This document shows, one piece after another, positions 8,201 through 20,200 of a stretch of DNA of 64,000 nucleotides; position 1 is the stretch's first letter, and every line of letters starts with the position of its first letter. The translations under genes were made by a program, and so were the position numbers. Source of the DNA: Macrostomum lignano (Eukaryota); NCBI GenBank assembly GCA_002269645.1, contig NIVC01002470.1, positions 107,315 through 171,314 of the forward strand. Direction: 5' to 3'. The notes under the pieces were generated by a model. It worked only from the letters and a program-made list of their open reading frames with translations, searched no databases and was not told the DNA's origin.

Positions 8201-11200
8201 GAAAGGGGATCAGAGAGAAAGGGTATCAGAGAGAAAGGGGATCAGAGAGAAAGGGGATCAGAGAAAAAAGAATTAGAGAGAAAGGGGATCAGAGAGAAAG
8301 GGGATCAGAGAAAAAAGAATTAGAGAGAAAGGGGATCAGAGAGAAAGGGGATCAGAGAGAGAGGGATCAAAGAAAATGGGGATCAGAGAGAAAAGGCAAG
8401 CAAACATTGGTGCAAAAGGCAATCAAGAAAAGAGATTCAGCGCCAAGTCTCACAGGCAAGTAGAGCAGGAAGCAGTTGAGGATGACAACCACAGTATAGA
8501 ATCGCTTAAACCTGGCGCTCTGCACCACATCGTAGACCCGAGCCCTGGCCCGGTCCCATTTGCCGCCGCGCAGCACGTTGGGCCTTGGCGGGATTCGCAA
8601 CGGCTGAGTCAGCTTGATGCGGCCCTTCAAGTCCAGCCATCGGCGCTGGTCCACTGTGAGCAGGGCGGTGCCTTTGTTCTCGCTGTAGTTGGCCACGACC
8701 ACGCCTACAAATAGGGTGAGCCCGATCAGGCAGCCGATAAACACGAACAGGTGGATGTAGTCCGCGTGGCTCGGGTGCACCCGGGACATCAGAATGTCGC
8801 GCACGTCCACCCAGCCTTCGAGGGACAGCACCTGGAGAGGTAGGTTGGTGACCGGGTCAGGAGCGACAGGCAAAGCGTGCCGAGCTTGCTTGATGAGATG
8901 GGGTATGGGATACGGGGCGGGATGGGGTATGGGATACGGGGCGGGATGAGGTATGGGATACGGGGCGGGATGGGGTATGGGATACGGGGCGGGATGAGGT
9001 ATGGGATACGGGGCGGGATGAGGTATGGGATACGGGGCGGGATGAGGTATGGGATACAGGCGGATGGGGTATGGGATACGGGGCGGGATGAGGTATGGGA
9101 TACGGGGCGGGATGAGGTATGGGATACAGGCGGATGGGGTATAGGATACGGGGCGGGATGAGGTATGGGATACAGGCGGATGGGGTATGGGATACAGGCA
9201 GATGGGGTGTGGGATACGGGGCAGATGGAGTATGGGGTACGAGCGGGATGGGGTATGAGAAAAAGGCGGATGGGGTATGGGATACGGGGCGGGATGGGGC
9301 ATGGGATACAAGCGGGATGGTATGAGATACGGGCGGATGGGGTATGGGATACGGGGCGGATGGGGTATGGGATACGGGGCGGGATGGGGTATGGGATACG
9401 GGGCGGGATGGGGTATGGGATACGGGGCGGGATGGGGTATGGGATACGGGGCGGGATGGGGTATGGGATACGGGGCGGGATGGGGTATGGGATACGGGGC
9501 GGGATGGGGTATGGGATACGGGGCGGGATGGGGTATGGGATACGGGGCGGGATGGGGTATGCTATTCGGGGCGGGATGGGGTATGGGATACGGGGCGGGA
9601 TGGGGTATGCTATTCGGGGCGGGATGGGGTATGGGATACGGGCGGGATGGGGTATGGGATACGGGGCGGGATGGGGTATGCTATTCGGGGCGGGATGGGG
9701 TATGGGATACGGGCGGGATGGGGTATGGGATACGGGGCAGATGGGGAATGTCCAGGTGAAAGTTCACCGAGTGCTCACCTCAAACAGCGCCAGCAGCGCT
9801 CCGCCAATCGTGTCAAAGTTGAAGTTGCGCGGGTTGGCCCACACCCTGGGCACCAGGATCCTCGGCGGCTGGCCCTCCAGCCGAAGCCGGGTGACGAACA
9901 CCTCCCGCTCGAAGGTGCCGACGCACTCCTCCTTGGTAGTCTTGCTGCGATCGTTGCAGATGCCCAGCCGGCCGCCGAACAGGTGAACTCCGTAGATGGC
10001 GAAGATGAAGATGAATACGAACAGCAGCACGGACACCATGAAGATTTCGCGGAAGCCGCGGACCAGCTCGTATACAACTCGGCGTAGCTGCGGCACCAGG
10101 CTGAAGATGCGCAGCGGCCGGAGGCAGCGGAACACCATCAGCCACTGCTCGATGGAGCCCGGACGCACAGTTTTCACGTGCAGCATGTAGCACATGTACA
10201 GCAGGCTGGTCTGGCGCGGTGAGCGGGTCATCGGTGAGTTACTGAGATTGTGAAACTTAGGGGCGATTCTCGGGTAGGTTAGGGTTGATTATCGGGTATG
10301 TAAGGGGCGATTCTCGGGTAGGTTAGGGGCGATTCTCGGGTAGGTTAGGGTTGATTATCGGGTAGGTAAGGGGCGATTCTCAGGTACGTTAGAGGGGCGA
10401 TTCTCGGGTAGGTTAGGGGTGACTCTCAGGTAAGTTAGAGGGGCGATTCTCAGGTAGGTTAGAGGGGTGACTCTCAGGTAGGTTAGAGGGGCGATTCTCA
10501 GGTAGGTTAGAGGGCCGAGTCTCAGGTAGGTTATTCAGGTAGGTTAGGCCGAGTCTCAGGCATGCAGGGAATCAGCACTGACTTACCGCGTAGATGAACA
10601 GATCCAGCACACCGTCGAAGTCGCGCACAAGCGCCATCGGCGTGAAGAAAAATCCGTTGGCCACCACTTTCAGAGTCAGCTCAGTAGTCATGGCAACAAA
10701 GAAAATGTACTCGGCCGCCCGCAGCCAGGCAGTGTTCATTACGCGCTCATTCAGAGTCTCAAAAGTCATGCAGGTGATGGACAGCACCGTGACAGCGATC
10801 ATCACCCAGTCCAGGTAGGTGACCAGGCCCAGCAGGCGGAGGGCGCCCTTGTCCCGCAGCAGCGATTTTAGCTCAGTCTCGTTGCCGCCGCTCGGGTCGT
10901 AGCGGGCGTCCACCAGCCGCTTGCACAGATCCCTGCACAGCGAGTGGCGGCGTGACCTCAATCTCACGGCTGAAACTCAAGTCCAGCTCACCTCAGGCTG
11001 GCAATCTCACCGCTGAGCTAGAGTCCAACTCACCTCAGACCCTCAATCTCACGGCTGAGCTCAAGTCCAACTCACCTCAGACCCTCAATCTCACGGCTGA
11101 GCTCAAGTCCAACTCACCTCAGACCCTCAATCTCACGGCTGAGCTCAAGTCCAACTCACCTCAGACCCTCAATCTCACGGCTGAGCTCAAGTCCAACTCA

Positions 11201-17200: not shown

Positions 17201-20200
17201 CCTCATCAGACCTCTGCACTCCCAGCTGCTGTTCCTCATCAGGCCTCTGCACTCCCAGCTGCTGTTCCTCATCAGGCCTCTGCACTCCCAGCTGCTGTTC
17301 CTCATCAGGCCTCTGCACTCCCAGCTGCTCCTCATCAGACCTCTGCACTCCCAGCTGCTGTTCCTCATCAGGCCTTGCACTCCCAGCTGCTGTTCCTCAT
17401 CAGGCCTTGCACTCCCAGCTGCTGTTCCTCATCAGACCTCTGCACTCCCAGCTGCTGTTCCTCATCAGACCTCTGCACTCCCAGCTGCAGCTGCTGTTCC
17501 TCATCAGACCTCTGCACTCCCAGCTGCTGTTCCTCATCAGGCCTTGCACTCCCAGCTGCTGTTCCTCATCAGGCCTTGCACTCCCAGCTGCTGCTCCTCA
17601 TCAGGCCTGCACTCCCCATCAGGCCTCTGCACTCCCAGCTGCTCCTCATCAGGCCTGCACTCCCCATCAGGCCTCTGCACTCCCAGCTGCTGCTCCCCAT
17701 CAGGCCTCTGCACTCCCAGCTGCTCCTCATCAGGCCTCTGCACTCCCAGCTGCTGCTCCCCATCAGGCCTCTGCACTCCCAGCTGCTGCTCCCCATCAGG
17801 CCTCCGCACTCACCACAGGAAAAGTGGTGAACATGCCGTACTCGCCAGTAGACGGTATGAAGCAGAACAGCTGCAGGCTGATGGTGCTAGTGATGACCAG
17901 CAGGCTGATGGTGAACACCACTAGGGTGCCCAGCTTCTTCACTGGGCCGAATATTTTAAAGCAGAAATCTTCGAGCATTGGGGAGGCTTTGATTAGGCGG
18001 ACAACGCGAAGCACCTGCAGTGGAAACAGCAGTAGATTAATTAGAACAAATCTCAGGCATTTTCTTAAAAGACTGAGTGGCAGAGCAGCAACGTCTGACA
18101 CTCAAAAGCAAATCCCCCGTACAGCACAGAGTGCACCGTACACCCTGTGTGACTTCAGGGGCACAGGACACAGGCCACAGACACGAGTAAACTGGCAATT
18201 AGTCAGCAGAGATTCCCTGGACTAAAAGCTTTCGTCCTCAGATAATAATTTCGTAGTCTATGGGTGAGGCAAGCCGAGCCAGCTGCCCGCTGAGCACTGC
18301 TGCTCCCCATCAGGCCTCTGCACTCCCAGCTCTCCTCTTTTCTTCTCCTCTCTTCTCCTTTATCCCCTCGCCTCTACTTTCTCCTATCTCTCTTCTCTCT
18401 CCTCTCTCCAATCCCCTGGCCCGCAGTCATGCGCTAGATTCTCTATCTGGCCCTTGAGGAAATAAAGTTTGCCGATCCCTGGAGTATAGAATACCCTCTA
18501 TAGTCCTTGCATAGTAGACCAAAATACTTTAAGATCAACACGCTAGAAGCTCACCTGAAAATAGGCCAGGTGCGTCCAGAACAGGCCGGGCACCAGACGC
18601 AGCGAGGTGAAGATGCACAGGCACAGCTCGAACTTGTGCAGCGACTGGCTCCAGTAGCCGCGCCAACCGAAGCACAGGATCTTGAAGATAGCTTCGATGT
18701 CAAACAGCACGGTGAACATGTTTTCAACTGCCTGAAAGGGGAAGACTGAGCCGCTCGGGCCCTCGCTACCCGACCCTTCTTCGCCGCGAGCTTGCCTGTC
18801 GTGATTGAAATGAACTCCGGCCGCAACGAAGCTGTTGGCCAGCACCAAAAGCATGACGATGACGCTGAAGCCGGTGGAGCGGGCCAGACGGACCAGGGGC
18901 GCCGGGGCCCAGCCTCTCGGCTGAGAATCGTCCACGGCAACTAAGCGCCAGGCCTGCGGCGGTTTAGTGTTCGGGTGAAGTAGCTAGCCAATCAGAGTTC
19001 AGATAGTGTACAGTAGCTAGCCAATCAGAGTTCAGATAGTGTACTGTAGCTAGCCAATCAGAGTTCAGATAGTGTACAGTAGCTAGCCAATCAGAGTTCA
19101 GACAGTGTACAGTAGCTAGCCAATCAGAGTTCAGACAGTGTACAGTAGCTAGCCAATCAGAACTCGGTTAGTGTACAGTAGCTAGCCAATCAGAACTCGG
19201 TTAGTGTACAGTAGCTAGCCAATCAGAGTTCAGTTAATGTACAGTAGCTTGGCCAATCAGAGTTCAGTTAGTGTACAGTAGCTTGGCCAATTAGAATACA
19301 GTTAGTGTACAGTAGCCAATCAGAGCTAGTGCAGAAACATGCTATTACAAATTGGACTGAAATTCCGATATACTCAATGCATTAAAACTTCATCTCACCT
19401 GCCCATCCACCTGCAGCATCCTGGAGCCGTCCGAGCCGGAGTCGGACTGCGGCCGAGTCCACATCTGCTTGAACTGGACCCTGATCTCAGCAAATGTTTC
19501 AATCAGCACAGCAATGAACACGTTCTTAACCAGCCATACTAGAAAGAAGATCAGGCCAACAAAGTACGCTACGCTCTTCCAGCGGTGTCTGGTCGGCAGG
19601 CTGTCCAGCGTATTGTACATGATGTACACCCAGCCTTCCTTAGACGCCGCCTGGTACACCGTGAAGAAGCTGACGTGAAAATTATCGAAGCCATTGTAAT
19701 GCATCTCTTTTTTGTCCTTGTCGTTAATGATTCGAATGCACATCATGTTGACAGGGCAGGATGTGTTGTCGAAGCAGCGAGTGTCCGGGATGGCGAGGTC
19801 CTGGATTGTGACATTTCTGCGAAAGGGGTAGCGGATGGGCTGAAGGTAGTGGACAGGTGACAGACCAATAGACAGTCAGAAAAAAATGGTCAGAATATCC
19901 GTTAGGCCCCGTACTAAGAGTAAAATGATCTCAAAATCTCACTTCGTATCGGCCGTCTTCAACACGCAGTGCATTTTGAGGCTCTCGCCGAAGCACTGCA
20001 CGCCCAGGATGCCGAACAGGGCCATGAAGAAGGCGAGGAAGATGGTCACGTTGAACACCTGCTTGCCGGACCGCCTAGAAGTGCGGCGATGGGGTGCAAC
20101 TGCGTGCAGACAGTAAGACAGACAGTACTGTCAGATAATAATATAAACACACTCCAGACACTTAGCGATACTCTACGGCAAATATTAACAAGACAGGCAG

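Follow-up and report, generated by a model that had tools for sequence, protein, structure and literature searches.

An EEEE member of a NALCN gene pair in Macrostomum lignano with a putatively calcium-channel-like pore

Introduction

The closest described counterparts of the gene analysed here are the dual-pore NALCN genes of lophotrochozoans (Senatore et al. 2013, PMC3557258), in which E-type and K-type cassettes for the pore of domain II (DII) form a tandem pair of mutually exclusive exons within a single gene, and domain I (DI), always with the filter SQEGW, is common to both isoforms. In Lymnaea stagnalis, exon 15a contributes the DII glutamate of LNALCN-EEEE. An earlier note on the DNA studied here had pointed out that vertebrate NALCN is EEKE and that invertebrates can switch between EEEE and EKEE or EEKE by alternative pore exons, which agrees with that work (PMC3557258).

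Lineage-specific duplication of a usually single-copy four-domain channel, as found here, is also represented by CaV3a and CaV3b of cnidarians and by NCA-1 and NCA-2 of C. elegans. The cnidarian genes carry the Ca2+- and Na+-type pores that are made by alternative exons in other phyla (PMC10120453); NCA-1 and NCA-2 are invariably EEKE, with no split of the pore (PMC12412391). The FAM155, UNC79 and UNC80 subunits occur across animals, and both a NALCN duplication and a FAM155 duplication are listed for M. lignano (PMC12412391).

Results

The window (the whole 64,000-nucleotide stretch of DNA that was analysed) contains the NALCN gene Mlig029264g3, whose 16 exons, when spliced, give exactly the 1967 aa protein PAA57585.1, with GT-AG borders at 15 of 15 introns (Table 1). 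This exact match rules out that the pore motifs are chance fragments of open reading frames. The four motifs were found where the earlier note had placed them, all on the minus strand of this single gene; the range that it had given, 8454-19816, spans precisely exons 4 to 13 and leaves the DIV motif outside.

Table 1. Features of Mlig029264g3 (positions are those of the window).
Feature	Position	Strand	Remarks
NALCN gene Mlig029264g3	4474..22146	(-)	Exact spliced match to PAA57585.1; ATG at 22146, TGA stop at 4474
Exons 1-8	22146-21868, 21359-20884, 20074-19943, 19816-19399, 18953-18555, 18014-17814, 16765-16487, 13720-13350	(-)	
Exons 9-16	12476-12191, 12010-11874, 10932-10587, 10210-9779, 8831-8454, 7638-7041, 6169-5764, 5239-4474	(-)	
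Exon 4, DI pore loop and S6	19399..19816	(-)	
DI filter AAS-K355-E356-G-W	19650-19630	(-)	Exon 4; E356 GAA 19638-19636, K355 AAG 19641-19639
Intron 6, upstream of DII cassette	16766..17813	(-)	33-bp minisatellite covers 95%
Exon 7, DII pore cassette	16487..16765	(-)	Homologue of 'exon 15' in other NALCN genes
DII filter FTSENW (T-S646-E647-N648-W)	16741-16724	(-)	Exon 7; E647 GAG 16732-16730, N648 AAC 16729-16727
41-aa insert, DII P2 helix to S6	16565..16687	(-)	Residues 662-702
N-glycosylation sequons of the insert	NDT (N674) 16651-16649; NGT (N690) 16603-16601	(-)	
Intron 7, downstream of DII cassette	13721..16486	(-)	Tandem repeats cover 65%
Intron 12, within DIII pore-loop coding region	8832..9778	(-)	24-bp minisatellite covers 90%
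Exon 13, DIII filter and S6	8454..8831	(-)	Exon boundary between ..ALLALFEV and LSLEGW
DIII filter LSLEGW	8828-8811	(-)	Exon 13; E1257 GAA 8819-8817
Exon 14, DIV S1 to pore	7041..7638	(-)	
DIV filter VTGEDW (E1555, D1556)	7119-7102	(-)	Exon 14; E1555 GAG 7110-7108

The assignment to NALCN made earlier is borne out by the search of solved structures, in which a rough gene model was the query: human NALCN was the top match (1472 bits, E = 0), with CaV1.2 at 270 bits, NaV at no more than 168 bits and CaV3 chains at E about 1e-47 to 1e-48. Every named protein among the best 120 database relatives is a NALCN. Four stretches of the protein match Pfam PF00520 (Ion_trans; 425.9 bits), which corresponds to four repeats in one polypeptide. 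The S4 segments and S4-S5 region of DI and DII (stretches of 21 and 20 residues) align with human NALCN, and R136, R139 and L140 (DII alignment numbering) are invariant. Copies g1 and g3 of the gene differ by 28 synonymous and 12 nonsynonymous changes (omega 0.14), nearly all replacements being confined to the N- and C-terminal tails and exon 7 having none. The locus is an intact NALCN gene under constraint, and purifying selection acts on it.

The EEEE ring reported earlier consists of E356/E647/E1257/E1555, the codons of which were located in the exact gene model. E356 and E647 align with E280 and E554 of human NALCN, and in an alignment of 116 sequences (Mlig029264g3 and 115 other NALCNs) E1257 and E1555 occupy the filter columns of DIII and DIV. 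The remark that SKEGW and SENW are unusual was confirmed by this alignment, since Lys at DI -1 and Asn at DII +1 occur in none of the 115 others. Their DI -1 residue is Gln in 101 and Pro in 13; at DII -1 they have Gln (109), Asn (4) or, in a single case, Ser, and at DII +1 Gly (64) or, in arthropods, Ala (50). A scan of 1.84 billion representative proteins, made without a profile, found SKEGW/SENW in M. lignano models only. The remaining two filters are ordinary: LSLEGW of DIII, canonical for lophotrochozoan NALCN, is present in 44 of the 115 sequences, the remainder having the K-type LSFKGW, and GEDW of DIV in 114 of 114. Asn648 departs from the glycine at +1 of DI-DIII stated for "every animal NALCN" (PMC10120453), a rule that is already loose because of the alanine of the 50 arthropod sequences.

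Gln to Lys in DI requires a single nucleotide change (CAG to AAG), and apart from K355 the 18-residue DI loop is nearly the same as that of the EKEE paralogue described below. At least three copies in the genome (g1, g3 and g4) carry the SKEGW/SENW residues, as do UniProt entries (A0A1I8...), which are separate gene models, broken differently, and probably belong to a different annotation or assembly; this makes a sequencing error unlikely. The gene has kept the four filter glutamates, the invariant Trp, Thr/Ser at -2, a 12-residue S6 motif and D1556, which corresponds to D1390 of human NALCN.

The boundaries of exon 7 (after ..TTFPV and before IVLSLF) match those of the cassettes of other species, and its content is strongly diverged, the divergence of the gene being concentrated there. 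It is 35% identical to that of the EKEE paralogue, as compared with 69-85% for most other membrane-domain exons and 53% for exon 2. It matches the E-type, K-type and arthropod exon-15 profiles weakly (17.9, 9.8 and 11.6 bits), while the cassette of the sister gene scores 77-90 bits with each. Its origin may lie in an ancestral E-type cassette or in a K-type one that has changed back. The P1 helix reads SLLRSFEVF, and of the 31 changes at ultra-conserved NALCN columns that are specific to this lineage, seven lie in residues 636-644. The 41-aa insert was not found in any other NALCN examined; in copy g4 its NDT is replaced by NGT, so that the sequon is preserved. An AF2 model of DII alone (mean pLDDT 66.8) renders the insert as low-confidence helices (pLDDT about 52-56) and still predicts the P1-filter-P2-S6 secondary structure.

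Other pore exons, the use of which the earlier note had envisaged, were not found in the gene at the genome level: a sensitive tblastn with 22 pore queries, using E-type and K-type DII cassettes from 11 species, detected exon 7 and the three remaining pore loops but nothing else, and hence no alternative DII exon. The minisatellite of intron 6 leaves no space for one, intron 7, the expected site of a K-type "exon 15b", contains no pore-like open reading frame, and intron 12 has no alternative DIII (K) exon. At the locus of the EKEE gene, a single K-type exon and no second, E-type cassette was found. The tandem pair of mutually exclusive exons with the K-type downstream is thus lacking in both genes.

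The EKEE paralogue (Mlig020627g1/Mlig004978g1; PAA69944.1, PAA73358.1) occupies a separate locus. Its overall identity to the EEEE gene is 65% and its DIII and DIV filters are identical, but its DI and DII filters are the canonical SQEGW and TQKGW (vs. SKEGW and TSENW), it has no DII insert, its intron positions are partly different, and it adjoins an MCM10-like gene, whereas the EEEE gene adjoins a FAN1-like one. In a neighbour-joining tree of NALCNs only, the two genes are sisters inside Platyhelminthes (100/100 bootstraps) and group next with the NALCNs of neodermatan flatworms (100/100). Columns with a conservation of 95% or more show 20 deviations common to both genes; unique deviations at ultra-conserved columns number 31 in the E copy vs. 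10 in the K copy, and the E branch is longer. Sequence comparison thus indicates that the two sister genes come from a duplication in the Macrostomum lineage, with the E/K choice fixed as separate genes, and that the EEEE gene evolves faster than its sister.

Discussion

Of the two genes that make up the NALCN system of M. lignano, the one analysed here is probably the calcium-channel-like (EEEE) member. Like LNALCN-EEEE and the E-type forms of other lophotrochozoan dual-pore NALCNs, it has a DII glutamate, LSLEGW in DIII, TGEDW in DIV and the same DII cassette exon boundaries, and in both cases it is the E-type cassette that varies; the Ser at DII -1 (S646) is shared with the snail cassette (MCSEGW). 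It differs from them in that the E and K cassettes belong to separate genes, in the DI filter, and in DII, which has Asn instead of Gly at +1, a rewritten P1 helix and an insert of 41 residues. The cnidarian CaV3 pair differs at the +1 Asp/Asn, whereas the M. lignano pair differs at a residue of the ring itself.

The filter flanks were compared with those of T-type channels (CaV3.1-3.3; PDB 6KZO, 7WLI, 9AYG); CaV3.1 and CaV3.3 have TLEGW in DI, TQEDW in DII, ASKDGW in DIII and TGDNW in DIV. In the 11-residue DI stretch of M. lignano, as in CaV3 ASKDGWV.IMY, a Lys directly precedes the filter acid, and in SENW, as in CaV3 GDNW, an Asn directly follows it, with a +1 Asp in the opposite domain. 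Read cyclically, the filter triplets of M. lignano (L-E-G / G-E-D / K-E-G / S-E-N) correspond, after rotation by two domains, to the T-type pattern (L-E-G / Q-E-D / K-D-G / G-D-N): the matching residues stand in DI/DII here and in DIII/DIV in CaV3. This "rotated CaV3" likeness was spotted post hoc, and LEGW and GEDW, which make up half of it, are usual in NALCN. Judged by its distant matches to CaV3 chains and by its ring (EEEE, not EEDD), the gene is not a CaV3 member; its voltage sensors and, presumably, its partner proteins are also NALCN-type, unlike those of CaV3.

Of the two inferences of the earlier note, that of a Ca2+-preferring paralogue is better supported, owing to the separate EKEE sister, the absence of a K-bearing alternative exon and the T-type-like K(-1) and N(+1). 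By analogy, we favour it over a new route to Na+ permeability because K(-1) and N(+1) match CaV3 filters and the -1 Lys of CaV3.3, K1379, faces the cavity: it points down into the central cavity and bonds S1419 and mibefradil (PMC9019099). The -1 positions give backbone carbonyls to the filter (PMC10761187, PMC10120453), and these form the inner Ca2+ site (PMC10761187). The carbonyl of Lys355 would thus line the inner site, with the side chain below or behind the glutamate ring, as in the homologous Lys of CaV3.3. Asn648 would lie just above the ring, facing the conserved DIV Asp1556 and giving the Asp/Asn pair across DII and DIV that is a hallmark of CaV channels (PMC10120453). The equivalents of E280, E554 and D1390, which mediate divalent block in human NALCN, D1390 being required for it (PMC7182417), are all conserved.

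Several observations count against Ca2+ permeation. Human NALCN conducts no divalents (PMC7182417), and no invertebrate EEEE NALCN has been recorded (PMC12412391), so that Ca2+ permeation is an extrapolation from what holds for CaV and NaV channels. The beacon model links Na+ preference to a +1 residue that is small, neutral and not Gly (PMC10120453), and by this rule N648 points away from the Ca2+ reading. The DII +4 acid (D558 in human NALCN, which belongs to a cation site and takes part in divalent block) is Val (V651), and the CaV3 ring has Asp, not Glu, at two positions.

The other inference was that Lys355 neutralises one filter carboxylate, the EEEE ring acting like E(K)EE/EEKE and passing Na+, a mechanism unseen in other NALCNs. 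The loss of the +4 acid leaves less negative charge at the mouth, Asn648 is the kind of +1 residue tied to Na+ permeability in the beacon model, and the formal charge of the -1 to +1 stretches, counted from the motifs, lies between those of canonical EEEE and EKEE pores. Molluscan LCaV3 with exon 12a also has a Lys outside the four-acid ring that alters ion preference: it neutralises the DII +1 Asp, which gives a Na+-permeant channel (PMC10120453). That Lys, however, reaches the Asp from the DII extracellular turret, whereas K355 stands at -1, on the cavity side. Since -1 residues offer carbonyls and not side chains to the pore, K1379 is directed into the cavity and not to the acidic ring, and T-type channels with the equivalent Lys remain Ca2+-selective, neutralisation by Lys355 seems unlikely. 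Moreover, the conserved EKEE paralogue covers the Na+ leak, which would make a second Na+ pore redundant, and the EEEE gene is nevertheless kept by purifying selection in its several copies.

Possibly, the constraint on the gene was relaxed or redirected, and the DII loop no longer supports normal conduction, so that the protein would serve the NALCN channelosome, e.g., as a sensor or a scaffold with very low conductance or none. The excess of deviations at ultra-conserved columns over the K copy, the divergence of exon 7, which resembles that of disordered linkers, and the low AF2 confidence of the insert are consistent with this, and a role as a sensor with tiny open probability has been considered for NALCN (PMC10120453). 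We consider it quite improbable, as the low omega between recent copies, the lack of replacements in exon 7 between g1 and g3, the retained filter and S6 residues and the predicted pore-loop secondary structure argue against it. That the EEEE-only reading is an annotation artefact, with real transcripts containing a different cassette in DII or DIII, or losing the insert by splicing at an internal site, is hardly credible: some database models of the gene are visibly broken (P0121, P0158), but the deposited protein maps exactly, no second cassette was detected, introns 6, 7 and 12 are mostly minisatellite, and g1 and g4 encode the same cassette, the EKEE locus being likewise single-cassette.

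For the calcium-channel-like reading, we expect the product to be a leak channel that binds divalents strongly and has a moderate, T-type-like preference for Ca2+ over Na+, or at least shows strong Ca2+ block, rather than a Na+ channel arising from charge neutralisation; it would probably pair with its own FAM155 paralogue. After the duplication, one gene kept the canonical Na+-type EKEE pore, and the other, with Glu in all four domains, diverged further: DI -1 from Gln to Lys, the DII residues flanking Glu from Gln to Ser and from Gly to Asn, loss of the +4 acid, a rebuilt P1 helix and a glycosylatable insert before S6. The choice between exons 15a and 15b, made by splicing in snail, annelid and, reportedly, planarian, is split between two genes in M. 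lignano.

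Gene structure and family assignment

The protein database was searched with a rough concatenation of the open segments of the minus strand of the window. The closest database protein was P0001 (PAA57585.1, BOX15_Mlig029264g3, 1967 aa) of Macrostomum lignano, with 98% identity, followed by another M. lignano sequence (75% identity) and by NALCN orthologues of nemerteans, flukes, tapeworms, molluscs, and arthropods (50-59% identity). Exact spliced mapping reproduced P0001 residue for residue with 16 exons and 15 introns, all of the latter of the GT-AG type, from the ATG at 22146 to the TGA stop ending at 4474 in the window, which represents the final 64 kb of contig NIVC01002470.1 in assembly GCA_002269645.1. 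Four Ion_trans repeats were detected in P0001 by Pfam, and in a search of solved structures human NALCN scored 1472 bits as compared to 270 bits for CaV1.2 and lower values for NaV channels.

The four pore motifs named in the earlier note are indeed present on the minus strand at the positions that it gave, while its range of 8454-19816 coincides exactly with the end of exon 13 on one side and with the start of exon 4 on the other but does not include the DIV motif, which is in exon 14. Residues E356 and E647 align with E280 and E554 of human NALCN, and in an alignment of 116 NALCN sequences E1257 is placed in the DIII filter column (K or E) and E1555 in the DIV column (invariant E). This placement of the four glutamates confirms the reading of the filter as EEEE, proposed previously, and indicates that D1556 is the conserved DIV +1 aspartate.

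Features of the window associated with the EEEE gene and its surroundings
Feature	Position	Strand	Remarks
DI filter AASKEGW	19650-19630	-	exon 4
DII filter FTSENW	16741-16724	-	exon 7
DIII filter LSLEGW	8828-8811	-	exon 13
DIV filter VTGEDW	7119-7102	-	exon 14
GACA x172	20213-20879		intron repeat
16-mer x76	15011-16224		intron repeat
42-mer x22	10956-11878		intron repeat
24-mer x36	8897-9750		intron repeat
FAN1-like nuclease gene	~3824 downwards	-	locus annotated in the database with Pfam FAN1_TPR and VRR_NUC
Retrotransposon-like ORFs	26404-28492	+	zinc-knuckle Gag, aspartic-protease-like and reverse-transcriptase-like stretches
gag-like 131-aa ORF	29549-29941	-	retrotransposon-like
1073-aa open frame	49598-52819	-	
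Long Pro/Tyr-, Gly/Met-, and Ser/Leu-coding simple repeats	34583-35520 and 44269-45275		

Eleven of the 15 introns of the EEEE gene (4474-22146) are filled in 65-98% with micro- or minisatellites, different in each of them, and intron lengths vary between near-identical copies of the gene (intron 6 is of 518 bp in copy g1 and of 1048 bp in the window copy). Copy g1 (locus L003, record 28089-49348) is 99.7% identical to the window copy and is located about 60 kb away on NIVC01002470.1, in inverted orientation (the window corresponds to record 107315-171314). Both are followed by a FAN1-like (VRR_NUC) gene, which in the window is downstream of the NALCN gene and starts with MATSKAPPVLTADDGDD... 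in ORF 3824-3348. The pair would be explained by a segmental duplication in inverted orientation or, alternatively, by a fold-back of homeologous copies in the assembly. There is a third copy, g4, in a different contig. In the more distant surroundings, the gag-like ORF had no Pfam match, and plus-strand ORF pieces at 55957-62800 look, by eye from their translation, like a putative organic-anion-transporter (OATP/SLCO) gene.

Residues flanking the selectivity filter

The claim that the filter flanks are unusual is well founded. Among the other 115 NALCNs of the alignment, the position DI -1, which is Lys (K355) in the EEEE gene, is Gln in 101 and Pro in 13 (ticks), and the position DII +1, which is Asn (N648) in the EEEE gene, is Gly in 64 and Ala in 50, so that Lys and Asn, respectively, occur there in none of the 115. 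At DII -1, where the EEEE gene has Ser, Gln is found in 109, Asn in 4, and Ser in a single sequence, while Val at DII +4 replaces an acidic residue (Glu/Asp in 100 NALCNs, Ala in 13, and Gly in 1). Judged by sequence, the EEEE copy breaks two near-universal NALCN features, namely, the DI -1 Gln and the DII +1 Gly/Ala. When 1.84 billion representative proteins were scanned by HMMER with the segment from the DI pore through the DII S6 as a query, SKEGW and the DII insert were confined to gene models of M. lignano; in more distant NALCNs, the DI -1 residue is Q, E, L, or M. Glycine at +1 outside of DIV has been stated for every animal NALCN (PMC10120453). The arthropod Ala at DII +1 already loosens this rule, and Asn in this position is new. 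The same flank residues recur in the genomic copies g1, g3 (the one in the window), and g4, as well as in UniProt entries that represent separate, differently broken gene models, which makes a sequencing error an unlikely source of the odd residues. GENW or GEDW was seen in DII of distant non-NALCN four-domain channels among the representative-library matches (e.g., P0174 and P0177); thus, other four-domain channel lineages also have Glu-Asn-Trp.

The filters of human CaV3.1 and CaV3.3 are, from DI to DIV, TLEGW, TQEDW, ASKDGW, and TGDNW, which indicates that Lys at -1 and Asn at +1 are native to Ca2+-selective T-type channels. When the filter triplets of the EEEE gene are read cyclically from DIII (L-E-G, G-E-D, K-E-G, S-E-N), they resemble those of CaV3 read from DI (L-E-G, Q-E-D, K-D-G, G-D-N). 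With two Macrostomum-specific substitutions, Lys for Gln at DI -1 and Asn for Gly at DII +1, the CaV3 pattern becomes complete, rotated by two domains (180 degrees) with its handedness preserved. As this match was seen after the fact, and half of it is ordinary NALCN sequence, we treat it as a hypothesis. The EEEE type of NALCN, the duplication in M. lignano, and the -1 Lys/+1 Asn of T-type filters are already known; a NALCN with the K(-1)/N(+1) pair, as read from these sequences, appears to be undescribed.

Separation of pore types between two genes

Other lophotrochozoans toggle between EEEE and EKEE by the use of tandem, mutually exclusive DII cassettes, 'exon 15a/15b' (PMC3557258). In the RefSeq 'isoform X2' protein models P0003 (Lineus) and P0022 (Biomphalaria), the E-type and K-type DII cassettes are present in tandem in one protein, and this is likely an annotation error that results from reading through mutually exclusive exons. 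Permissive tblastn searches (word size 2, E up to 20), in which E-type and K-type pore segments of DI, DII, and DIII from up to 11 species served as queries, led us to reject alternative pore exons both in the window, where they matched nothing but exon 7 and the three remaining pore loops, and at the EKEE locus, where the matches were limited to known exons and paralogous pore loops. At the genome level, the window contains no second cassette. Tandem repeats make up 95% and 65% of the introns flanking the DII cassette and 90% of the intron inside the DIII loop.

The 75%-identical M. lignano protein, P0002, and its full-length twin P0273 (Mlig004978g1, 1960 aa) have the filters AASQEGW, LTQKGW, LSLEGW, and VTGEDW for DI to DIV, respectively, and are thus of the EKEE type. 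Their loci (L001 and L004) contain one DII cassette, which is of the K-type, and the E-type exon is absent there. Since each locus has a single DII cassette, the E and K pore types are split over two M. lignano genes. Such a split between sister genes appears to be undescribed.

Divergence of the paralogues

The two M. lignano paralogues are sisters (100/100 bootstraps) within a flatworm clade of 100% support in a neighbour-joining tree built from 1497 columns of 25 NALCNs, and the branch of the EEEE paralogue is about 1.7 times longer than that of EKEE. No planarian NALCN was among the matches listed. Of the deviations at 542 columns with a conservation of 95% or more across other NALCNs, 20 are common to both paralogues, 31 concern the EEEE copy alone, and 10 the EKEE copy alone; seven of the 31 fall in the DII P1 helix (residues 636-644). 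Most membrane exons are 69-85% identical between the paralogues, but the identity is 53% in exon 2 and only 35% in exon 7, which contains an insert of 41 residues (662-702) with the sequons NDT and NGT. In copy g4, NDT is changed to NGT with the sequon retained. When compared to cassette profiles, exon 7 scored 18 bits with the non-arthropod E-type, 10 bits with the K-type, and 12 bits with the arthropod one, all of these scores being too weak to favour either an ancestral E cassette or a reverted K cassette as its origin. In the DI loop, the changes relative to the sister gene are essentially limited to Q to K (CAG to AAG) and F to Y. The remodelled DII cassette, predicted from its sequons to be glycosylatable, appears to be undescribed.

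The dS between the E and K paralogues is about 1.6, i.e., saturated, and the omega of 0.17 is therefore only indicative. For this reason, constraint was measured on the recent copies g1 and g3, between which 28 synonymous and 12 nonsynonymous changes were counted (omega 0.14); most of the replacements affect the terminal tails, and exon 7 has none. The paralogues do not share all of their intron positions: the EKEE gene lacks intron 1 of the EEEE gene, has the counterpart of exon 12 split (309 + 123 nt), and contains an additional 3' intron. These differences suggest an old duplication. An MCM10-like gene flanks the EKEE locus. M. lignano was reported to be among the few animals with duplicated NALCN, and its FAM155 is duplicated as well; the relevant passages of that work contain no discussion of the filters of the paralogues (PMC12412391). 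A literature search with the M. lignano NALCN locus tags found no mention of them.

Possible consequences for permeation

In the pores of the CaV and NaV type, the side chains of the ring face the lumen, while an inner site receives backbone carbonyls from the residues at -1 and -2 (PMC10761187, PMC10120453). The -1 lysine of CaV3.3, K1379, extends downward along S6 in the structure of this channel and enters the central cavity, where it bonds with S1419 and mibefradil; its equivalent in CaV1.1 is Phe (PMC9019099). The open-access literature on this CaV3 lysine yielded descriptions of drug binding only, and no selectivity mutagenesis was found there. By analogy, the charge of K355 would most likely be located close beneath or behind the Glu ring and not within it. 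Residue N648 would be opposite to D1556 across the pore, forming an Asp/Asn pair of the kind regarded as typical of CaV channels (PMC10120453). In human NALCN, divalent cations block rather than permeate, and their block is nearly abolished by E280A, E554A, and D1390A and moderately reduced by D558A at DII +4 (PMC7182417). None of the invertebrate EEEE NALCNs has been characterised (PMC12412391). AlphaFold2 modelling of DII alone (mean pLDDT 66.8) kept the order P1-filter-P2-S6, with a long P2 helix and an outward-extended S6; the insert is of low confidence and the positions of side chains are beyond this model.

The best reading, based on analogy with these channels, is that the EEEE gene may encode a leak channel with strong divalent binding and a T-type-like Ca2+ preference or block, which would substitute for the exon-15a isoform of other lophotrochozoans. 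The alternative, that K355 neutralises a filter glutamate and in this way provides Na+ permeability, has a precedent in LCaV3-12a and gains some support from N648 and from the loss of the DII +4 acid, but it fits the structural precedent less well, and a Na+ pore would be redundant with the conserved EKEE paralogue. Hence, of the two interpretations offered in the earlier note, a Ca2+-preferring paralogue holds up better than neutralisation by the DI lysine. A more far-reaching scenario, in which after the duplication of NALCN (and FAM155) in the Macrostomum lineage the copy freed from the double pore role acquired a T-type-like filter and became a genuine Ca2+-conducting leak channel, seems to us rather improbable.

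In most animals, a single gene gives rise to both the EEEE pore and the K-containing pore by splicing, and isoform-specific genetics is therefore cumbersome. As these pores are in separate genes in M. lignano, paralogue-specific knock-down, tagging, and heterologous expression are straightforward in this species. The replacements in the EEEE copy are themselves residues that T-type calcium channels conserve and provide a compact, testable hypothesis on what the -1 lysine and the +1 Asp/Asn pair contribute to selectivity. If the T-type-like convergence were true, this channel would become the first Ca2+-passing NALCN on record, and a set of natural mutants with which the function of the -1 Lys, a conserved residue, and of the Asp/Asn pair can be probed for four-domain channels. 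If the channel behaves as an ordinary NALCN, these positions would be shown to tolerate changes of charge and size. The interest of the finding is moderate and lies mainly in the fact that the question of Ca2+ permeation through EEEE NALCN becomes testable in a tractable animal, the flatworm model M. lignano.
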